Shown: positions 7,908 through 62,039, counted from the first letter of the stretch. The stretch is DNA of 64,000 nt from Octopus sinensis (GCF_006345805.1 NC_043008.1:26536001-26600000); one strand, 5' to 3'. Numbers and translations are program-made. Notes: generated by a model not told the origin, from the sequence alone.

Positions 7908-9128
7908 AGTGGGTCAACTGAAAAGTTCATAAGCTGAACAAGATACTCTCATGGAATATGACCATTTTTTCAACATAGTCCCCTTTTTAATCCACACAAT
8001 TCTACCATTGGTGTTACAGTGCTTCACTCTCCTTGATGCAGAAGCTTTCATCCTGCTGGTTAAAAAAAAACTCAACAGCAGAAATTATGTCATCATCATT
8101 GTGTTTTTCCATGTTGTGGAACAGATGATTGTCAGATGGGGCCAAATCAGGAGAATAACAGTGGTGATTAACCAGTTCAAAGCTGCAGTCACACACAGCA
8201 ATCAATAAAAGTAAGGACTTGTGTATTGGAACATTGTCCCCATGAAACAAGACACCTTTCATCAGTTTTACTGAGTGTTTGGTCTTGGTAGTCTTTCATA
8301 ACTGTCTCAACAAGTTGACATTGTATTCTCCATTTATGGTGTGTCCCTTTTGAAGATAGTCAATAAGCACAATACCTATTGCATCCCCAAAACTGAGGCT
8401 GTCACCCTCCCTGCCGATGAAAACCTTGGCCTTCTTTGGAGCAGGTGAGGAAGTGTATTTCTACTGCATGGATTGTCTCTTTGTCTCTAGCTCAAAGTGA
8501 TGAACCCAACACTCATCTTGGCTTAGGAAACATATGAGGAAACCAGCTGGATCTGCTTCAAACAATGTCAGATTTTCGGTGATGTGATCAACCTGGTGTG
8601 CTTTTGATTAGGTGTCAGAAAGCTCACCAAGTAGAAAGCTTCATTATGCTAAGTTCATGGTGCAGAATATTCTCAACTCTCTCATGGGATATGCTAATAG
8701 CATTAGCTATTTGATTTATAGTCAATCACCTGACATCCATTGCCGTGGGGTGAACACAATGAATGTTTTCTTCAGTGGTAGCAGTTTCAAGCCATCCAGA
8801 CATTGGGTCATCTTCAAGACTTTCCCTTCCCCTCCTAAATGTTGTAGCCCACTTTTGCACTGTTGATAAAACTGGAGTGTCAGCAAGCATGTAAAAATGA
8901 ATGTTCTTGGGAGTTAAGTCCTTTTTCTGCAGGTATGCCAAATTTTGTCCATTTCCAAAAGATGTCAATATGAGTTACATTTAAATTCTTCTTTGAACAG
9001 TCAGGTGTCAGTTTACCTAAAAAGAAGCAATGCAGTTATTAATAAGAAGGGTTGAAAGTAATGCATGCAAGGTTTCACAACTCTAGCCCCATTCCTTCAT
9101 AATCAGCCTATGAACTTGGGTGATTGAC
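7908..9128 (-). mobile_element. Mariner (DD34D) transposon, decayed near-full-length copy
   Basis: HTH region STVQKWATTFRRGRESLEDDP; catalytic region DNVPIH, YSPDLAPSDNHLF; degenerate TIRs aagttcataagctga (7925) and tcagcctatgaactt (9103). Confidence 0.85.
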
Positions 9129-9860: not shown

Positions 9861-9901
9861 ACTAGCATTATGACCCGGCATTGCCGGGTCATACTGCTAG
9901 T
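9861..9901. repeat. 41-bp hairpin (20-bp arms, 1 mismatch, 1-nt loop)
   Basis: actagcattatgacccggca-t-tgccgggtcatactgctagt. Confidence 0.95.
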
Positions 9902-9944
9902 GCATGTATATATGTGTACATATTACATGTACATCTATATATCT

Positions 9945-10153
9945 CTCTTTCTCTCTTTTACTTGTTTCAGTCATTTGACTGCGGCCATGCTGGAGCACCG
10001 CCTTTAGACGAGCAAATCGACCCCGGGACTTACTCTTTGTAAGCCCAGTCCTTATTCTATCGGTCTCTTTTGCCAAACCGCTAAGTGACGGGGACATAAA
10101 CACACCAGCATCGGTTGTCAAGCAATTCTAGGGGGACAAACACAGACACACAA

Positions 10154-10189
<36 letters not shown>

Positions 10190-10375
10190 TTATATATATA
10201 TATATATATATACGACAGGCTTCTTTCAGTTTCCGTCTACCAAATCCACTCACAAGGCATTGGTCGGCCCGGGGCTATAGCAGAAGACACTTGCCCAAGG
10301 TGCCATCCAGTGGGACTGAACCCGCAACCATGTGGTTGGTTAGCAAGCTACTTACCACACAGCCACTCCTGTGCC
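9945..10375 (-). mobile_element. tRNA-derived SINE family A (CORE-like), full-length, CpG-rich copy
   Basis: Homologous to copies at 27085, 48610, 50262, 52888 and 53655; tRNA-like head ggctgtgtggtaag..ggttgcgggttcagtccc; internal TA/CA repeat; (GTAAAAGA)-type tail. Confidence 0.85.
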
Positions 10376-10484
10376 TATATATATATACATCTACACATAA
10401 AATACAAAATACAAAGTTATATCTTGACATCACTAGTGATAACAGTTCTCAAAAAATATATAACAGACTGGAATTGTAGGCCCG

Positions 10485-12450: not shown

Positions 12451-13464
12451 AGCTTGCCTACCAATGACATGGTTCCGAGTTCAGTCCCACTGCATGGTGC
12501 CTTGTGAGTGGATTTAGTAGACAGAAACTGAAAGAAGCCCATCATATATATATATATATTATATATATATATATTATCAATTAATCAATTTAGGGTAGCA
12601 AAAAATTCAATAGAAATAATTTTGCCATCAGCGGTCTAGTGAGAAAGAGGAAATAGTCAGAGACTATGAATAAATTCAACAACAATTGAGGAACGGCTAC
12701 AATAGGCCTTTCGACCCACTAGAAATAGCAGCCAGGGCTCCAACCGCAAATAGTAGTAATTCCGAAATCTAAGGAAAAATTAAAAAAACATTTACCCTGT
12801 TCTTCTTTAGACAATGCATTGTTTCGGTGGTTTTTAATGGTAAACCAGCCTGATTAAATTAAATTACCTAGATAGATAGATACAGAGAGAGAGAGAGAAA
12901 GAAAGAGTGAGAAACTGATTAAAGTTGAATGCATTTTTCTATGTTTTTTCTCACTTAATTGTTGTGTTTAAAAATCCCACAGGCATCTGTTTTATTTTCA
13001 GGTTTTGATATCATTGCTGTGGTTGTTGCTGATATCAAGCCAATTTGGTCGTGATGATCTATGATTTATGATCAAAGGCATTTTATGATCAGAAGCAGAT
13101 CTATAATCAAAGTCTCTTATACTATGACCATCCTGCCATTAATTCACGCAGTACACATCTAACTACATAATGTAAGAACATTTTTCCTTGTTTTAAGACA
13201 ACAGTGTGGTTTGACGGAAATTTGACAGCTTTTTCTAGGAGACTGAATGACCACACAGAGGCTCCATCACTGAGTTATGACTTACTGTTTGATAAGCTAT
13301 ACACCAGTAAGATACTGTAGATGACCAAATAAAAAAATTATAACAAAGAGAAAAGGAATATGAAACTGGAAGCCTCTCAAGGGTATCAAACATCCTAATT
13401 CGTCTCAAGACTTAAATTGGGCATTTTGATCTGGTGAATTGTCATGCAAGAAATATTGATTTTA

Positions 13465-16399: not shown

Positions 16400-16950
16400 A
16401 TGTCCCTGCTATGTGGGTGCTACGACTTCTGATACCTGATCAAATGTGCACCAGGCTGATCACATCACCAGAAAATTTCACATTGCGTGAGGTAGATGCA
16501 GCTAGTTTTCTTGAATGTTTCCTCAACTGGGATGAGTTTTGAGCTCATCCCTTTGAGTCAGAGACAAAGTGACGATCCGTGCTGTGGAAACACCCTTCCT
16601 CATCTGCTCCAAAGGAGGCTAAGATCATTTTCTCTTTAGGGAAGGTGACGACCTCAGTTTTGTGGAAGCAAAAACCATTGCGCTTATTCAAAAGGGCTAC
16701 ACGATCAATGGAGAGTACAATGCCAACTTGCTGAGGCAGTTACATAAGGCTATCAAGGCCAAATGCCGAGGAAAACTGATGGAAAGGGTCTTGTTTGAAG
16801 AAGACAATGCTTCAGCACACAACTCCTTGTTTTCAATGGCTGCTGTGCATGACTGTGGCTTTGAACTGGTTGATCTTCTTCCCTGTTCTCTTGATTTGGC
16901 CCCATCTGACTATCATCAGTTCTCTAACAGGGAAAAGCACTTGGCTAGGA
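16400..16950 (+). mobile_element. Mariner transposase fragment
   Basis: WVLRLL, W..HPFESETK, DNASAH, SLDLAPSDYH motifs. Confidence 0.85.
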
Positions 16951-17130
16951 ACCATGTAAAAAGCACCCAGTACACTTTGTAAAGTGGCTGGCCTTAAGAA
17001 GGGCATCCAGCCATAGAAACCATGCCAAAATAGACAAATAGAGCCTGGTGTAGCCCTTCAGTTTGCCAGCTCCAGTCAAACTGTCCAATCCATGCCAGTA
17101 TGATAAAGAGACGTTAAGTAATGATGATGA
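16950..17130 (+). mobile_element. RTE-type tail
   Basis: catgtaaaaagcaccc..aagaagggcatccagcc..atgatgatgat. Confidence 0.7.
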
Positions 17131-18330
17131 TAATTTTAAAAAAATCTGTGTTATATTTTCATATATAAGTATGAGTAATAGACCAAATAAAACAAAGAAG
17201 CAATAGTTTTCTATATTTTTAACTGATATGTTTTTTTAACTTTCCATGTGAAGTACACCAGCATATTTTTTCATTTGATCCCCAGTGTGTCATAAAGTCA
17301 AATATACTTGTGAAACAATAAGAAGAGTTATAAAAAAAAAGAAGAAAATTTGTGTTGAATTTTACTTTGATATGGACTCAGAAATATGTTTATAAAAATT
17401 CCATATATTATTCACTGTTGTTCTCAAGTAAACACATTTTATTTATTACCATCTAGTGTATTCTGTCTGAAACAAATTTTAATAAATAATATAGCATGCT
17501 ACTGTGGTGTTACCGCTTTATAGTGATTTGATCCAAGAATTATATATACATTCTGCTAATGGAATTCTTAACAAAATCAATACCTCTTTTAGGCAATTTT
17601 ACATTACCATTTGGATATTAAGATGAGGTCACCTTTAGTATGTCGCTCTCTACTTTATATATATACAAGCCTTTTAGTATAATATTACTCATGAATCAAA
17701 ACACTTTTACATCATTTGTATTAGTAAAACACCACAATTCAACTAATCGGTCGATTGCCTGCTCAAGATATTAGTAGAATGGTATTTACCATTAAATCTT
17801 TAGAATTAAATTCTATTACAAAAGAACCATACTTTCCTGTTATGAGACAGAGAACATTTTACACAAGAACAATATACCTCTTTGTTGAAATGAAACAATT
17901 ACATCTAAGGATTGTTGTCTTCATTCAAGTTTGTGTAATATGTAAATGCCAAATACTGGCATCAATATTAGTAGACACAAGGTACCTGTTTATTGTCTAT
18001 TTTGTGTGCAAACTTATCAAAGATTTTCTTAATGAATCCCTTGATTTCTCTGTCTTGCTAGAAATCTTTAGACAATTGTTACATATTTATATAAACAACA
18101 CAGCTAAAATAAGGAAAGAATACAAAAAGAAAATCGGATATCATTTTAATAAATTAATATCATGAGAAATATAAACATTTATCAGCACAACCCTAAAATA
18201 ATTCCACCCCTACTGTGTATATATACATACATATATATATATTATAATTCGAGACAAAACCACTATTTTAAAACCAAACAAGGAAAGACTTAATCAATAC
18301 ATAAAATTTTAATATAAATTAAATAAACCG

Positions 18331-18374
18331 CCACTACAATTGTTTCATGTCTGCTACCGACAATCTTCAGGTGG
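18331..18374 (-). ncRNA. Minimal type I hammerhead ribozyme (mirror copy)
   Basis: Exact reverse complement of 18429-18472. Confidence 0.75.
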
Positions 18375-18428
18375 ATTTTCGATCTTCTAATCAGTATCAA
18401 ATTTGATACTGATTAGAAGATCGAAAAT

Positions 18429-18472
18429 CCACCTGAAGATTGTCGGTAGCAGACATGAAACAATTGTAGTGG
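18429..18472 (+). ncRNA. Minimal type I hammerhead ribozyme (predicted)
   Basis: CCAC-CUGAAGA-U-UGUC(ggtagca)GACA-U-GAAAC-AAUU-GUA^GUGG: helix I CCAC/GUGG, core CUGANGA, helix II UGUC/GACA, GAAA, palindromic helix III, GUA cleavage triplet. Confidence 0.75.
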
Positions 18473-18644
18473 CGGTTTATTTAATTTATATTAAAATTTT
18501 ATGTATTGATTAAGTCTTTCCTTGTTTGGTTTTAAAATAGTGGTTTTGTCTCGAATTATATTATATAATATTTTACTATAAAATTGGATTTAACCCTAAA
18601 TCTGATTTTTCCCTGTAATTTTGGATTCATTCCCTAATATTTAT

Positions 18645-18678
<34 letters not shown>

Positions 18679-19689
18679 AGATAAAAGTGTGTAGACAAAT
18701 GATTATGTTCAAGGCTTGAATACTCTATAATGGAACAATAAATCAGCTTGTTAAAGTTGTTGAAGGCTTGATCCCTAGCTTAGCTCATGAATATCACTTT
18801 CTAGTAAGCGAATACTGATTAAAACACCATATATATAATACAAAGCAGATATCACTATAAATTTAGCCCAGAAAAAGTACTTACAAACAGTCATCTGCAA
18901 GACGTATTCCTCTGACAATGTAACTCATGCTAGCATCAAAGGGGACAAATGATGAATAAACAAATTTGTTCTAAGTGTAATGTGTTCATTCGTAATTCAC
19001 ATATCTAATAAGTCCAGTTCTAAAGACAGACCTATGGCATAGAAAAACCAGATGAATGAAGCATCCATTAGCATTTCTAACAAATATTCACTCGAAGGAA
19101 TATTAGGGTATGTTGTGTGGAATTTAAGTGTTCCAGTGAGGTGTGGAGCTGATCTTAAGAAGTATGGTGATATGTTTTGTCCGTGATTGACCTCATTATC
19201 TAACATACTTTAAGCATATAGCTGTATACATACATACATACATACATACATACAACAAGAAACCCCACCTCAGGCAAATTTACCTATTTTTTCCATGGAT
19301 TAGAAAATGTGGTACAGCCTTATTTGATTTTCAGCCCTCATTGGACTTGTCATTGTTCTAAATTTGATACAACAAAGCACCAGTTATGTACCAGGGTCAT
19401 TATACTCTCCTGATCCCTTTACCCTAATTTATTGCCCTGTTCATATGTAAGGAATCATTATTGTTGTTGTTGCTATTCTTGCAGTATTCGTTTTTGCAAT
19501 AGTAGTTTATGTGTACAAATTTAATTTACTGGCAAAGCAGATATTGGGTTGGTTGATGAACATGTTTGAGTGTGTGTGTGTGTGTGTGTGTGGTGTGTAT
19601 GTATGTAAATTTAATATATTTTCTGTGTGTGTGAATAGCTGAGTGTGCAAGTGTGTGAATGTTTTATATGTATGTATGTGGTATGTTTA

Positions 19690-20130
19690 TGAATATGCTT
19701 GGCATATATGTTTGTTATTCTCATTATATGACTCTTTGTTTTTCTCTCGTTGAGAGATTGCCAAGTAATGTATTTAGTTTCTATCCTTGTGTTCATTAGT
19801 TCTGTTGCTCATCTTAATGTATAAGTGATAACCCATATACTTGTTAACTCTTTTAGGTATTTTTTATAGAAGTCTTTTTGTATAGAACATTTTATTTTCT
19901 TCTCTGAAAGAAATTTTTGTATCTGAGAGGCATAGCTATTACTGAATATAGTTTTGTCCTCTGGTCCATTCTCAAATATTCTATTTTATGTTTGTTTTCA
20001 GAGTCATGTGCTGTTGTATTTTTAGACTAAGGTTCACTACAACATTTTTCAGGTTTGTACTCAAAGCTTTGCTGAATTGTTTCAATTCTTTAATGCATAA
20101 AGACATTAGCCATTTATAAGTGCTTCTCTC
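19690..20130 (-). pseudogene. Decayed ORF of probable retroelement origin (possibly Penelope-like N-terminal region)
   Basis: One frame of about 140 codons with 3 stops (KWLMSLCIKELKQFSKAL..SLNERKTK); no diagnostic motif. Confidence 0.25.
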
Positions 20131-20194
20131 TGATACAAAATCTCATTTTTTTCCCATCTATTTAATTATAGATTAAAAGCCATCATACAATATT

Positions 20195-21479: not shown

Positions 21480-22120
21480 TTACAATTTTATGTTAATGTT
21501 GTTTTCAATACACACACACACAATTTTACTATTTTATCAGCAGCTTATTTATGCCAGCAGTGAAGAATTCTGGAGAGCAAGAGGTGATGAAATCACAAAA
21601 GGCTTTTTTTCATCTTCAGATTTGAAGTTTTTTCCTTGCAAAAAGCTGTCTAATTCCTGGAAAACGTGATAGTCAGTTGGTGCAAGGTCTGGTGAATATG
21701 GTGGATGACAGAGAACTTCCAAGTTCAGTTCCTGTAACTTGAGTAGCGTTCTTTGTGCAACATGTGGTTGAGCATTGGCTTGTATCTATTGACCAATCTT
21801 GGCTGTTTAATTGCAAGGTCACTCATCATTTCATCCAACTGGTTGATGTATACATCCACTTTAATTGACTTACCAGGTCTCATAAAGTGGTAGTGGATGA
21901 CACCAGTGCTGCACCACCAAACGGACACCATTAGCTTTTTTTTTATGAATATTCTTTTTGGAATTGTGTTTCAGCACTTCGTCTCTGTCCAACCACCATG
22001 CAGAATGCTTGCTTTTGTTGAAAAGAAGCCATTTTTATTACAAATAACAATACAATGCAAAAATAGTTTACTTATATGCCATGACTGCAAAGAACAGCAA
22101 GTTTCCTACATCGGTAAGCA
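21480..22120 (-). mobile_element. Mariner transposase fragment (Hsmar1/SETMAR-like)
   Basis: MVSVWWCSTGVIHY, HPPYSPDLAPTDYHVF, PEFFTAGINKL. Confidence 0.85.
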
Positions 22121-23117: not shown

Positions 23118-23394
23118 ATATATATACATATAAGTATTTAAATATATATATGTATATATATTTGGAGCCTAGTGCATCCGCTGAATCTCCAGACCTCAGT
23201 CAAACCATCCAACCCATGCCAGCTTGGAAAACGGATGTCAAACGATGACGATGATGGTGTTGATGATGATATATATATATATATATATCACAGTTAAATA
23301 GGTATCATTTCTGCAATGTTTATTGCATTCGTCATTTGTATTTTAATAGTGAGTAATTTGTTGTTTTAGAGCAATAGCTCTGTTTATAGCCAGT

Positions 23395-23592
23395 GGTAAT
23401 ACCCTGTGCAGGTGGAACGTAAAAGCACCCACTATACTCTTGGAGTGGTTGGTGTTAGGAAGGGCATCTAGCTGTAGAAACTCTGCCAGATCAGACTGGA
23501 GCCTGGTGAAGCCATCTGGCTAGCCAGTCCTCAGTGAAACTGTCCAACCCATGCCAGCATGGAAAGCGGACGTTAAACGATGATGATGATGA
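23395..23592 (+). mobile_element. RTE-type tail (another partial copy at 23165-23270)
   Basis: Close match to 6880-7049, ending in (GAT)n. Confidence 0.85.
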
Positions 23593-23656
23593 TGGCATAC
23601 ATATATACATGAATGTATGTTTATACATGTATGCATGCATACACACACATACACAA

Positions 23657-24924: not shown

Positions 24925-25515
24925 AAGGTTAGTTAAAATATGTTCAATTGCTAAAAGGCAAATTCACTGCAGTTATGCTGGACAAAATATCTCTCTTATG
25001 GTAAAAAAAAAGTGAAAATGCCTGGCTTGTTAGGTGTCACCATCTGTTAGGAATTCCAGGCATTGATGTTTTGAGTTTTTTGACTCTTGTTAATTGGATG
25101 CACCTAAGAGATGCAACTCTGAACCAACTTATAAAGCAATAGTTTTATGTAAACTTCAATCAGCATTGTTGACTGCTTTGTGCTGCTAGATCACCTGATT
25201 GAGGAAAATAATGGAATTTTTAAGTTACAATATGTTTGTGATATATTTCAACTGCTAAAAGGCAAAATCACTGCAGTTACCACTCTTTCTTATAGTAAAA
25301 AAAAGGTGTGAAAACACCCAGTTTGTTCCGTGTCACTATTATTTTATAAGATTTGCTCAGAGTTGCCCCTCTCAAGTACATTCTATTGACAAGAGTAAAA
25401 AAATTCGAAATATCGATGTCTGGGAGTCCTGATAGATGGTGACACTGAAAAAACCAGGTGTTTTCACATCTTTTTACGATACGAGAAATATTTTCACCAT
25501 GGTTAAAAACATCCT
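24925..25515. repeat. Unclassified repeat of about 300-350 bp in tandem-plus-inverted arrangement
   Basis: Unit 24935-25230 restarts at about 25230; an inverted copy lies at 25345-25510; same family at 62040-62445. Confidence 0.7.
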
Positions 25516-30243: not shown

Positions 30244-31414
30244 CAGAGGTTGGACAAAATAATAGAAACACCTTAAAATTTCAAACAAATATATTTTAAT
30301 ATGGGGTAGGACTGCCTTTGGCAGTAATTACAGCTTGAATTCTATGAGTTATGGACTCGTACAAATGTTTCCAAAGGAATTTTCATCTATTCTTCAGCTA
30401 AAATGTACCATAAATGTTCAGTAATATTGAGATCTGGGGGCTGTGGTGGCTAGATGAGATGTTCAACTTCACAAGAATGTTCCTTATACCATTCAATAAT
30501 AATTTTAGCTGTTTGAATTGGTACATTATCATCCTGAAAGATTGTGCTACCTTCTGGAAATAGTTCTGCAAACATAGGAAGAATTTGATCAGATAAAATG
30601 TTTAAATAGTGTTGACTATTAATTCTGCCATAAAGGGAAATCATTGGGCCAGCAGATTTCCAAGATATAACCTCCCAGATCATGACAGATCCTCCACTAT
30701 GTTTAACAGTTGGAAGAAGGCAGTCTGGATCAAATGCTTCCTTTTGCTGTCTCCACATGTATACTCAGTTAGTGGTTGGAAATAAGGTAAAGATTGGCTT
30801 GTCCAAGAAAATAACATTCTTCCACTGTCCTAGGGACCCAGCCAGTAGGTTTTTATTCCACTCTAAATGCTTTGCAATGTTTGTTTTTGAAAGTTCTGGT
30901 TTTCTGATTGCAGCTCTCCTGTGAAATCTGGCTTTGTGCAGCTCTCAGCGAACAGTTTTCATGGAAACTGTGTTCTTGTGGTGGTCATTAAGCTCTGCAG
31001 TAATTTTGGTAGCTGTACTTTTGTGATCTTTTCTAACAATTTGCATACGAGTCCGACGGTCCCTATCTGAAAGTTTTGGTTTTCTTCCAGAGTTTTGTTT
31101 CGATGAGCAGGTTTTTCCCTCTTTCACAAAGGCTGTCATTACTTTCAAGACAGTACTTCTTGATGCACCAAATATTTCAGCTTTTTCCATTATGCTAGCG
31201 CCTGCCATACAAGCACTAATAATTCGATTTCTTTGAAAGTGCTATAGATCTGTCATTTTAATGAATTTTAATTACCTTTTTAGCAAAACATATTAAGCAA
31301 CACTAATAATAAATCAAAAAACATAAAAATAAACAAGCTTTTGACAGTTTCATTGATATTTCAAAATTATGATGCTATGTTGCTAGGTGTTTCCGTTATT
31401 ATGTCCAACCCCTG
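30244..31414 (-). mobile_element. Tc1 (DD34E) transposon with both TIRs and TA target duplication
   Basis: TIRs cagaggttggacaaaataatagaaacacc and ggtgtttccgttattatgtccaacccctg; TVKHSGGSVMIW, FQDDNVPI, SGRKPKLSDRDRR. Confidence 0.92.
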
Positions 31415-49024: not shown

Positions 49025-49033
<9 letters not shown>

Positions 49034-50246
49034 TATAAAACTGTCAAAAACTTGTTTATTTTTATGTTTTTTGATTTATTATTAGTGTTGCTTAATATGT
49101 TTTGCTAAGATTGCCGTTTCTTTTCAGATATAACCAGAAAAAGGTAATTAAAATTCATTAAAATGACAGATCTATAGCACTTTCAAAGAGATCAAATTAT
49201 TAGTGCTTGTATGGCAGGCGCTAGCATAATGGAAAAAGCTGAAATATTTGGTGTATCAAGAAGTACTGTCTCAAAAGTAATGACAGCCTTTGAGAAAGAG
49301 GGAAAAACCTCCTCATCAAAACAACACTCTGGAAGAAAACCAAAACTTTCAGATAGGGACCGTTGGACTCGTATGTGAATTGTTAGAAAGGATCACATAA
49401 GTAGAGCTCCCAAAATTACTGCAGAGCTTAATGACCACCTCAAGAACCCAGTTTCCACAAAAACTGTTCACCAGGAGCTGCACAAAGTCAGATATTTTGG
49501 GAGGACTGCAATTAGAAAAACACTACTTTCAAAAACAAACATTGCAAAGCGTTTAGAGTGAAATAAAATCCTACAGAATTGGTCCCTAGAGCAGTGGAAG
49601 AATGTTATTTTCTTTGACGAGTCATCCTTTACCTTATTTCCGACCACCAGCTGAGTATATGTGTGGGGACAGCCAAAAGAAGCATTTGACCAAGACTGCC
49701 TTCTTCCAACTGTTAAACAAGGAAGAGGATCTGTGATGATCTGGGGTAGCTATTTATTGGAAATTTGCTGGCCCAGTGGTTTCCCTTCATGGCAGAATTA
49801 ATAGTCAAGACTATCTAAGCATTTTATCTGATCAAATTGATCCTGTGGTTGCAGAACTATTTCGAGAGGAAAACACAATCTTTCAGAATGATAATGCACC
49901 AATTCACACAGCTAAAGATGTTAATGAATGGCACGAGAAACATTCTTGTGAAGTCAAACATCTTCTCTGGCCTCCACAGTCTCCAGATCTCAATATTATT
50001 GAACATTTATAATGCATTTTAGAAAAACAAGTAAGGAGACGATATAATCCACCATCATCATACAAGAACTGGAGACTGTTTTAGCTGAAGAATGGATAAA
50101 AATTCCTTTAGAAACAATTCAACCTTTGTATGAGTCCACACCTCATACAATTTAAGTTGCAATTAATGACATAGGCAGTCCTAATCCATATTAAAATAAA
50201 TTTGTTTGAAATTTTAAGGTGTTTCCATTATTTTGTCCAACCCCTG
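49025..50246 (+). mobile_element. Tc1 transposon, same family as 30244-31414, left TIR lost
   Basis: FQNDNAPIHTAK, WPPQSPDLNIIEHL; right TIR ggtgtttccattattttgtccaacccctg followed by TA. Confidence 0.9.
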
Positions 50247-50261
50247 TATATATGTATATAG

Positions 50262-50460
50262 GTGCAGGCATGGCTGTGTGGTAAAAAGTTTGCTTTCCAA
50301 CTTCATGGTTCTGGGTTCAATCCCACTGCATGGCACCTTGTGCAGTTATGTTCTGCTGTGGCCTCTGGCCAACCAAAGCCTGCTGAATATATTTGGTGGA
50401 CGGAAACTGAAAGATGCCTGTCATATATATATTTATGTACATGTAAACACACACACACAC
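50262..50460 (+). mobile_element. SINE family A 5' half (a 3' half lies at 51075-51300)
   Basis: gcaggcatggctgtgtggtaaaaag.. head. Confidence 0.85.
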
Positions 50461-50480
50461 GTATGTATATATATATAATA

Positions 50481-50920
50481 CAAATGAAAAATAGAGAGAA
50501 ACACAAGATGTTATTTAAATCATTTATATTGCTGATATATCTTTCGATCAATACAGTAAAATTAATCCAGGAAGAATAATAATGTGGAGTAATGTATCAA
50601 TCTTATCAGGGAGGAGATTATAAATAATAGTGTTCATTAATAAGCCATTTTACAGATGTAAGAAATTATAATATATATTATAATTTCTTGCATGTGTAAA
50701 AATGGCTTATTTATTAACACTGTATATATATAATTTCTTACATCTGTAAAAATGGTTTCTTAATAAACACTGTTATTTATAAACTTCTCCCTGGTGAGAC
50801 TAATACGTTATTCCACATTATCTTTCTCCCTGCATTAATTTTAATGTATCCATTGAAACATATGTCGGTGATATAAATGATTTAAATAACATCTTGTGCT
50901 TTTGTCTCCATTTTCTATTA
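50481..50920. repeat. Diverged palindrome (arms about 190 bp, roughly 80% identical) with a degenerate hammerhead in each arm
   Basis: Arms 50481-50670 and 50730-50920; + strand CUGGUGA..GAAAC-AUAU-GUC^GGUGA (50791-50871); - strand CUGAUAA..GAAAG (50609-50541). Confidence 0.85.
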
Positions 50921-52887: not shown

Positions 52888-53285
52888 AGGCATGGCTGTG
52901 TGGTAAGAAGCTTGCTCCCCAACCACATGGTTCTCGTTCAGCCTCACTGCATGACACCTTAGGAAAGTGTCTTCTACTAAAACCTCAGACTGACCAAAGC
53001 CTTGTGAGGGAATTTGGTAGAAAGAAGCCCGTCGTATATAATATATATATATATATGTGTGTGTGTGCGTGTTCGTGTTGTCACCCCCCCCCCGCCAATC
53101 GCTTGACAACTGATGTTAATGTGTTTATGTCCTCATAGCTTAATGGTTCAGTAAAAGAGACTGATAGAATAAGTACCAGGTTTACAAAGACTAAGTCAAC
53201 GGGTCAATTTCTTTGACTAAAAGACAGTGCTCTAGCATGGCCACAGTCAAATGACTGAAACAAGTAAAAGAATAAAAGAAAAGAA
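52888..53285 (+). mobile_element. SINE family A, full length
   Basis: tRNA-like head through (GTAAAAGAA) tail. Confidence 0.88.
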
Positions 53286-53688: not shown

Positions 53689-53773
<85 letters not shown>

Positions 53774-53775
53774 GC

Positions 53776-53807
<32 letters not shown>

Positions 53808-53809
53808 GC

Positions 53810-53869
<60 letters not shown>

Positions 53870-60840: not shown

Positions 60841-61575
60841 ATGATAATAATGATGAGGAGGAGGATAAGATTGTGCTGACAAGTTCTACCCACATCCTTA
60901 GAAAAACCCTACCAATTTAAATGTCTGTGTTGTATTACATAAAGATATATTGCTACTGACTCTCCTCCCCAAGCTTTCACTCATACTGTAACCTCTCTCA
61001 TCTGTCACTTGCCCAGGGATGCTGGCTGTGTCTCAGCAAGTGATTGTAATAAACATACAGGTTAAAAGTAAATAACAACAATAAAAATAATTATAAATAT
61101 TTTCTGTAGGTATAAATGATGGGCTACAATCAAATATTCTGCTTAACACCACAGATTTGCTTAATTAGTTGCTTGACCTTAACAAGTTGAGCGTGTCCCT
61201 TAGCAGCTGACAATATGTGCATCTCTGATCATGAGCAGAAGTAGTGGGAGGGCATCATAGCCATGTGTTGAGAGGAATTCTTTGGGGTTTGAATTATTCA
61301 TCTCTGGAAACATGGGTGTTTTGTTTCAACATTCTTAAACAACCTTTATTTAGGGACCTTTTGAGTGGGATGGGCTACTCAATCTGATAAAAATAATAAC
61401 TGGGACCACACCTGCAAAGTCAATCTCTGTTTACCTTGATATGAGATCACTATGTTGCACAGATATGGTTGTGATGCATGTGCCTGGTGTACCCTTATTA
61501 GACGGGTAGTCATGATGTGTATATTGGGCTTCGTATATTTGTATCCCAGTATCACTTTGATGGCATGCACTGCTC

Positions 61576-61583
61576 TCTCATTC

Positions 61584-61632
<49 letters not shown>

Positions 61633-61652
61633 TTAATAATAATAATAATAAT

Positions 61653-61695
<43 letters not shown>

Positions 61696-61710
61696 GTAAT
61701 AATATTAATA
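61576..61710. repeat. (AAT)n microsatellite
   Basis: Direct reading of the sequence. Confidence 0.98.
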
Positions 61711-62039
61711 ATTTATGAAAATTGGCACAATTCTTCACCATGGTAAATGAAAAGAGCATAACTGACTTTGTTTATTGATTAACTTCTTTATTGAAGTGAA
61801 CAATGTTTCAACAGTACCTCTCTTTTCTTCATATTCAAAATAGACAAGAACAAGGAAAAATACAAAATATGCAGAAAAGAAGAAATTCAAAATGTTCCTT
61901 CGTAGACAAACAAAATATCATCACATTCCCTTCATTTATACCTGATTAAAAGAAGAAAATGAGTTAGAAAAAGATTTTTGTTTTACATTGCTTTGTAAAT
62001 CTAATAACGAAATATTAGCACCAAGCAGTGTTTAGGCTT

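Follow-up and report, generated by a model that had tools for sequence, protein, structure and literature searches.

How did a perfect palindrome without a spacer come to lie in a stretch of octopus DNA whose other large repeats are strongly decayed? The question is raised by a 318-bp structure at positions 18243-18560 of a 64,000-nucleotide stretch of the Octopus sinensis genome (NC_043008.1:26536001-26600000), referred to here as the window. Coordinates are counted from its first letter and features are given on the plus strand unless marked otherwise. The palindrome looks like a non-coding, recently arrived and probably mobile-element-derived hairpin, a structure of a known type rather than a new system. 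A transposable-element origin, absent from an initial annotation of this DNA, is the leading explanation. The form of it that we tentatively favor is a young foldback-type miniature inverted-repeat transposable element (MITE) made only of two long terminal inverted repeats (TIRs).

An exact palindrome beside a TA microsatellite

The palindrome is identical to its own reverse complement over all 318 bp, as the initial annotation had claimed. The left arm (18243-18401) comprises 159 nt with a GC content of 29% and is the exact reverse complement of the right arm (18402-18560), with no spacer between them. The symmetry centre falls between 18401 and 18402, where ..CAGTATCAAA meets TTTGATACTG.. 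on the other side. Pairing first breaks at offset 160, where a T at 18242 faces a T at 18561; offsets 161-166 are complementary again, and beyond them complementarity ends. A repeat search of the whole window reported the arms as 166 nt, 99% complementary and separated by a 0-nt spacer. The palindrome is 71% AT, compared with 65% for the window. Its inner half is the G+C-richer part, and 40-nt segments of the arm range from 12 to 42% GC.

Folding calculations place the structure far outside chance expectation. As single-stranded DNA it folds at -199 kcal/mol, compared with -35 +/- 4 kcal/mol in dinucleotide shuffles (z = -39), and the predicted RNA fold reaches -265 kcal/mol (z = -51). It is the sole perfect spacer-less palindrome of at least 20 bp in the window, besides (TA)n-dominated tracts and a 30-bp example at 50660-50689. 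The remaining large repeats are strongly decayed, as had been stated before: identity among the 69 other pairs of at least 100 bp has a median of 74% and does not exceed 91.7%.

The two flanks are not alike. The left arm stops at a TA run, a (TA/CATA)n tract at 18214-18242 that adjoins it directly. On the right, where about 90 bp had been reported to precede the next (TA)n run, we measured an AT-rich unique tail of 84 nt (18561-18644, termed B below) between the right arm and a (TA)14 run at 18649-18676. Both parts of the earlier description are thus borne out. One of the two insertion anatomies discussed below hinges on this left/right asymmetry. Joined to each other, the palindrome flanks form one uninterrupted TA-rich tract. 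Neither arm is significantly continuous with either flank, and this test is therefore unable to tell which arm might be ancestral.

The arms retain CpG in a CpG-depleted region

The zero differences over 159 nt limit the divergence of the arms to at most 1.9% (95% bound). The CpG content of the arms is the most informative result on the origin of the palindrome. The window as a whole is very strongly depleted in CpG (observed/expected ratio (o/e) 0.22, compared with 1.05 for GpC), and so are the unique 2.7 kb around the palindrome (o/e 0.20, 12 CpGs). Each arm, in contrast, carries four CpGs in its 159 nt, with an o/e of 1.32 (left arm, 18250, 18329, 18358 and 18380; right arm, 18422, 18444, 18473 and 18552). 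At the local rate, the Poisson probability of finding at least four is 0.0057, a count reached by only 3 of the 539 comparable tiles that lie outside the palindrome. TG, the decay product of CpG, has a frequency of 0.025 in the arm versus 0.075 outside, a threefold deficit.

An arm that had long been resident should share the CpG depletion of its neighbors, and the arm is therefore most likely a recent arrival. We conclude that it is probably not old resident DNA that has folded back, a conclusion that is statistical and not absolute. The undepleted CpGs argue against a fold-back of resident DNA and likewise against an artefact that mirrors local sequence. The earlier proposal of a very recent origin fits both the arm divergence of at most 1.9%, set against the 74% median identity of the other repeats, and the undecayed CpGs. 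Ongoing arm-to-arm conversion, which had been offered as the alternative, is possible but not required to explain the identity of the arms.

Besides the palindrome itself, 159-nt tiles that keep at least four CpGs lie around 15848, 22791 and 23215. Such tiles may mark the youngest sequences of the window. The 84-nt tail contains no CpG, with about 1.1 expected without depletion (hand count), and is therefore uninformative on age.

Two candidate target-site duplications

Two different direct repeats could represent the target-site duplication (TSD) of an insertion. The first is the 9-bp sequence TATATTATA, identified in a symmetric-boundary TSD scan (k=4, L=9). Its left copy lies at 18238-18246, with the last four nucleotides, TATA, inside the perfect palindrome, and its right copy lies at 18557-18565. 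If this repeat is a true TSD, it encloses a palindromic core of 310 bp (18247-18556, no strand assigned) with two 155-nt arms and the termini ATTCGAGACAAAACC...GGTTTTGTCTCGAAT, and the terminus of the candidate foldback element reads ATTCGAGAC.... The 9-bp repeat accounts for the lone mismatch at offset 160 and for the renewed pairing at offsets 161-164.

The second is the 15-bp sequence TACATATATATATAT, the longest flanking direct repeat over all boundaries tried. The left copy (18228-18242) lies within the (TA/CATA)n run and ends exactly at the left edge of the palindrome; the right copy (18645-18659) opens the TA run that reaches 18676. Together they flank a 402-bp unit (18243-18644) that consists of an inverted copy of the right arm (A), the right arm itself (A) and the 84-nt tail. 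Removal of the 402 bp leaves a single compound TA microsatellite.

The chance rates of both repeats were estimated with nulls that respect the TA-rich, clustered flanks. Of 35 other TA-run ends, 5 (about 14%) have a direct repeat of at least 15 bp at comparable spacing, and the 9-bp repeat has a chance rate of 13-46%, as detailed below. Because both can arise by chance in TA-rich flanks, neither repeat decides between the two insertion anatomies. The tail at 18561-18644 is either target flank that predates the insertion, if the palindrome is a foldback MITE, or the 3' part of a 243-nt unit A+B, if it was retroposed. Within the tail, an imperfect 13-bp hairpin (AAAATTGGATTTA / ACCC / TAAATCTGATTTT) occupies 18580-18609; next to it comes a loosely repeated unit with CCCTAA at its end.

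A possible foldback-type MITE

We tentatively read the palindrome as a young foldback-type MITE. The element would consist of its two TIRs alone, which measure 155 nt each, or 159 nt with the self-complementary TATA at either end included. An autonomous element at another genomic site would have provided a DNA transposase in trans, and this enzyme would have cut and pasted the MITE into the degenerate edge of a TA microsatellite, duplicating the 9-bp target TATATTATA. Such an insertion pattern would point to a Mutator-like/Foldback-type or Merlin-type enzyme. The arms would be identical since the copy is young, possibly aided by arm-against-arm mismatch correction in the snapped-back hairpin. 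We infer the transposition, the type of transposase and the status of the 9-bp repeat as a true TSD. No host function is implied for the palindrome.

The anatomy is what would be expected of such an element. Two long TIRs are 100% complementary and enclose no internal region. The size of 318 bp falls in the usual MITE range, the AT content is high (71%) and the hairpin potential is extreme. On its left the palindrome borders the (TA/CATA)n run directly, on its right it borders TA-rich sequence, and (TA)14 comes 84 nt further out, a setting consistent with insertion into TA microsatellites. The undecayed CpGs of the arms are what a mobile sequence of recent arrival should show. The window is also rich in transposons and includes DNA-transposon remnants.

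The closest known architecture is that of MuTAnT, a Mutator-like foldback MITE of Medicago truncatula, and of the related Mutator-like elements of the Foldback/FARE type. MuTAnT is 292 bp long with 'almost identical' 144-bp TIRs, inserts into (TA)n and creates a 9-nt TSD (PMC4486113). Both are small elements made nearly entirely of inverted repeats (292 bp with 144-nt arms in MuTAnT, 310-318 bp with 155-159-nt arms here). They share the propensity to form a hairpin, the TA-microsatellite site and a 9-nt flanking duplication, which is not statistically distinctive in the present case. MuTAnT, in contrast, resides in a plant and has no sequence similarity to the palindrome, in which its GGGG/CCCC termini are absent. 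Furthermore, TA repeats directly flank only the left side of the palindrome. Membership in the MuTAnT type, which would entail a TSD of 9 bp (8-11 bp), a set of related genomic copies and an autonomous partner that encodes a mudrA-like transposase, is unproven.

Several observations weigh against the foldback-MITE interpretation. Chance alone yields a repeat of 9 bp in 13-27% of TA-rich flank pairs in simulation, and pairing the real right flank with other TA-run ends yielded one in 16 of 35 trials. The competing 15-bp duplication delimits a different insert. A blastn search with a word size of 7 detected no second copy of the arm within the 64 kb and no similarity of the arm to any other part of the window, the local mariner remnants included. 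Exact-pattern scans with three segments of the arm in viral, metagenome and prokaryote collections were empty. These absences carry little weight: animal genomes are not part of the collections, and 64 kb would not be expected to contain two members of a family that numbers a few thousand copies. The window yielded no Mutator-like or Merlin transposase, and no Mutator-like element (MULE) domain was detected among the open reading frames (ORFs) tested. Full identity over 155-159 nt is unusual even among foldback MITEs. Finally, some probability, if a small one, goes to an assembly artefact.

A Tc1/mariner-derived (Stowaway-like) MITE was also considered. The termini of the palindrome are not shared with the mariner-type remnants at 16427-16982, 8101-8620 and 21552-21970, a weak negative as the ends of these remnants may be missing. 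Symmetric positions of TATAATT...AATTATA always allow a TA TSD to be read, because this sequence is self-complementary. The three remnants are decayed transposase sequences on the plus, minus and minus strand, respectively. The one at 16427-16982 has a weak match to Pfam Transposase_1 and a 76% identical DNA copy at 8101-8620. Two mariner remnants flank the palindrome on opposite sides with their 3' ends facing each other, but neither is linked to it by sequence. When the nearest mariner ORF was used to search for homologues, only three distant matches emerged.

Possible retroposition with a folded-back cDNA end

The asymmetric flanks would be explained differently if the palindrome arose by retroposition of the 243-nt unit A+B (18402-18644) with a folded-back end of its complementary DNA (cDNA), an origin that we consider unlikely. 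Target-primed reverse transcription (TPRT) would have placed in the TA microsatellite a copy of a short RNA, or of the 3' end of an element without long terminal repeats (non-LTR element) that was truncated on its 5' side. The 3' end of the cDNA would then have folded back, or a second primer would have been used, such that 159 nt were recopied in inverted orientation and joined to the upstream target in TA microhomology. The centre of the palindrome would correspond to the 5' end of the copied RNA, and the insert would measure 402 bp with a 15-bp TSD.

This origin is consistent with the exact copies of TACATATATATATAT at the left palindrome edge and after the 84-nt tail, and it accounts for the asymmetry of the two sides, the spacer-less centre and the CpG-undepleted arms. 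The 15-bp length lies in the range of L1 TSDs (median 13 bp, quartiles 10-15; PMC12016303). TPRT break ends can self-anneal via tiny hairpins to yield inverted duplications, and foldback junctions with TPRT insertions have been described (bioRxiv 10.1101/2024.12.14.628481). In the window, moreover, TA runs are commonly parts or tails of short interspersed elements (SINEs). The 15-bp duplication is not distinctive, however, given repeats of this length at 5 of 35 other TA-run ends. The insert ends in ...CCCTAATATTTAT with no poly(A) or other clear tail, and A+B contains many T4 runs and is therefore not an RNA polymerase III SINE transcript. A+B has no recognizable source element, no matching Rfam family and no other copy in the window. 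The 36-codon open frame with which it begins has no homologue and would occur by chance about once in seven cases (base-composition estimate). The complete overlap of the cDNAs also contrasts with the median of 12 bp that is typical of twin priming, a process with a rate of 0.02% in short Alu elements (PMC12016303).

Foldback and twin-priming products of LINE-1, a long interspersed element (LINE), resemble the 402-bp unit in that they carry an inverted segment at the 5' side of the insertion and a target duplication of 10-15 bp (bioRxiv 10.1101/2024.12.14.628481; PMC12016303). In the proposed mechanism, the 3' end self-anneals via a tiny hairpin that primes synthesis (bioRxiv 10.1101/2024.12.14.628481). 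The described foldback cases come from human cells and tumors. The octopus sequence differs from them by the absence of a poly(A) tail and of a recognizable LINE or SINE, and by an overlap of 159 nt versus about 12 bp.

Other candidate sources for A+B were examined and rejected. A coding remnant found no backing in the 36-codon frame, the sole open one leading outward from the centre, which had 0 matches in 1.84 billion representatives. A nuclear mitochondrial insert was set aside, as A+B contains neither a mitochondrial tRNA nor a long ORF in the mitochondrial code; a mitochondrial rRNA or control region is still possible. The ORF lists include no viral ORFs nearby that would accompany a parvovirus-type terminal hairpin or another viral end. 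A laboratory origin of the DNA was also rejected, since A+B matches no phage, spike-in or plasmid/vector sequence.

Possible assembly artefact or replication error

A sequencing or assembly artefact is likewise unlikely in our assessment. A read chimera, or faulty polishing or local reassembly at a poorly covered microsatellite, could have created an inverted copy that exists in no DNA molecule. Perfect identity and zero spacer are what a computational mirror copy would produce, and coverage and alignment are typically poor at TA microsatellites such as the one in question. The palindrome is, however, internal and small, with unique sequence on both sides. The 64 kb contain no N, which suggests a long-read assembly. 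Fold-back chimeric reads mirror the whole end of a molecule and not 159 nt, and an out-and-back path through the assembly would mirror CpG-depleted local DNA, unlike the arm. No similarity to a spike-in phage or vector was found. Furthermore, the base at offset 160 that connects the TA run with the arm differs from the one that connects the tail with it (T versus A), and the left junction is therefore not derivable from the right-hand sequence.

An error of replication or repair is improbable. A strand switch, through fold-back or through template switching at a break or stalled fork, would have duplicated a resident arm, and the new copy would have been rejoined in TA microhomology. There is precedent for such events. 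Inverted duplications are the commonest inversion-type variant in 1,019 long-read human genomes, with 277 events of a median size of 284 bp; most carry 1-15 bp of microhomology, and a replicative origin was inferred (PMC12350158). Palindromes are known to arise through fold-back priming and through hairpin-capped ends (PMC7999016). The outer junction of the octopus palindrome lies in TA microhomology and its arm is single-copy in the window, and it shares with the human polymorphic inverted duplications the size class and the inverted copy that adjoins its source (PMC12350158). In the human cases resident sequence was copied, whereas the CpG content argues otherwise for the arm (o/e 1.32 versus 0.20 in the surrounding 2.7 kb, P about 0.006). 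In addition, there is no sequence continuity between either arm and its flank, and fold-back events usually leave a short asymmetric spacer, of which none is present.

Potential RNA products

Read-through transcription on either strand had been suggested to produce a perfect double-stranded RNA hairpin, and the predicted RNA fold agrees, with a perfect 159-bp stem at -265 kcal/mol. The further suggestion that this hairpin feeds Dicer and 21-22 nt small RNAs is unlikely to hold. A survey of 32 molluscs, among them Octopus bimaculoides, found neither a Dicer nor an Ago of the small interfering RNA (siRNA) type and no endogenous siRNAs (endo-siRNAs) (PMC12479628). Editing of a palindrome transcript by ADAR is possible, conditional on transcription. 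No sign of a gene or transcription unit at the palindrome was found among the ORF domains within about 1 kb or in the Rfam scan.

It is very improbable that the palindrome is a selected hairpin-RNA locus that is kept perfect for the sake of a duplex transcript, for example a microRNA-like or long-hairpin precursor or an ADAR substrate. The predicted hairpin is very stable, and a permissive Rfam scan gave E-values down to 3e-14 for long-hairpin plant miRNA models. At gathering thresholds, however, there were 0 Rfam matches. The permissive matches fall below those thresholds (MIR7504, 74.8 bits versus 83; MIR5185, 72.2 versus 101.7). Most of them recur as mirror images on both strands, and the families concerned are unrelated hairpin families of plants and animals, a pattern that points to matches of structure only. 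Selection for RNA pairing tolerates G-U pairs and compensatory changes and needs no identity at the DNA level, and the endo-siRNA pathway is apparently lacking in molluscs (PMC12479628). We give scarcely any credence to a stably inherited, domesticated foldback element whose arms are corrected within the palindrome and whose duplex RNA serves as a dedicated ADAR substrate or decoy tied to the exceptional RNA editing of coleoids.

Expected physical behavior

Cruciform instability is generally expected of long, identical and spacer-less arms. Longer and more identical arms and shorter spacers make inverted repeats more recombinogenic (PMC7999016). Among known structures, the closest in physical behavior are the human palindromic AT-rich repeats (PATRRs) PATRR11, PATRR22, PATRR17 and PATRR8, which are near-perfect, spacer-less palindromes of several hundred bp, each unique in sequence (PMC4940405, PMC1851657). 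Hairpin or cruciform extrusion, fragility and size polymorphism are expected of these structures (PMC4940405, PMC1851657), and the human PATRRs are size-polymorphic (PMC4940405). PATRRs are further characterized by central deletions as the source of this polymorphism and by their role as breakpoints of recurrent translocations. Their AT content exceeds 90%, in contrast to 71% in the octopus palindrome, and membership in the PATRR class is unproven. Fragility of the octopus palindrome is a reasonable expectation by analogy. With about 718 near-perfect spacer-less palindromes of more than 200 bp in the human genome (PMC7999016), such structures are rare and not exceptional.

Genomic surroundings

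The palindrome sits in a 3-kb stretch (17135-20188) without an interspersed-repeat copy elsewhere in the window. ORFs within about 1 kb of it have no recognizable domain. Exact look-ups of the flanking ORFs at 17755-18165 (plus strand) and 18997-19206 (minus strand) returned no record, and 11 stop-free segments from 10-26 kb, combined into one query, matched no near-identical protein. No tRNA was detected in the window, and no Rfam family matched it at gathering thresholds.

The window is rich in transposon relics, with remnants of gypsy-type integrase, LINE reverse transcriptase and mariner-type transposase, and in microsatellites. The best relative of the reverse-transcriptase remnant is an annotated Octopus vulgaris protein on OX597814.1 with 76% identity. 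A motif that we take to be that of octopus SINEs occurs four times, compared with 0.02 expected occurrences. Octopus-type SINE copies lie, for example, at 9900-10400, 12480-12580, 23160-23290, 23413-23593 and 53000-53250. These copies have a (TA)n(TG)n microsatellite in their interior or (GAT)n tails with TA/CATA runs behind them, and many TA microsatellites of the window therefore belong to SINEs.

A second, older palindrome-like structure occupies 50483-50919, with arms that are about 80% complementary over about 437 bp. Its core is the perfect 30-bp palindrome AAGAAATTATAATATATATTATAATTTCTT (50660-50689), and a tandem duplication of about 60 bp lies inside it. A (CA)n(TA)n run (50449-50478) directly borders the structure, which occurs once in the window, lacks a clear target duplication and is partly depleted in CpG (3 observed versus 7 expected). 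A further inverted repeat (25004-25127 / 25352-25475) has 124-nt arms that are 77% complementary around a 224-nt spacer, and is combined with a direct repeat of adjacent sequence that starts near 24945 and 25249. Comparison of these two structures (50483-50919 and 25004-25475) with the arm revealed no significant similarity, and the termini of the older palindrome-like structure differ from those of the 318-bp palindrome.

The longest repeat pair of the window is an inverted one (30398-31363 versus 49025-50022; 998 bp, 85.6% identical) with copies about 18 kb apart. A tandem array at 53700-53866 has a period of about 38 bp and units of CACATGCA(TA)n that give rise to several long TA runs. An ORF at 61379-61759 on the minus strand encodes almost only poly-leucine and derives from a long trinucleotide repeat tract.

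Implications

If real, the structure is a natural long, perfect and spacer-less palindrome in an animal germline genome. Long perfect palindromes are expected to stall replication and break chromosomes, and they are usually lost or missed in assemblies. Its importance is modest because no host function is evident. The contrast in CpG decay provides a simple and reusable test that, on the basis of one assembly, tells young palindromic insertions apart from fold-backs of resident DNA. To our knowledge, a target preference for TA microsatellites is otherwise documented in plants. Should the palindrome belong to a foldback MITE family with TA microsatellites as its target, this would be a sign of recently active DNA transposons in an octopod, and the element would offer a ready marker of insertion polymorphism.

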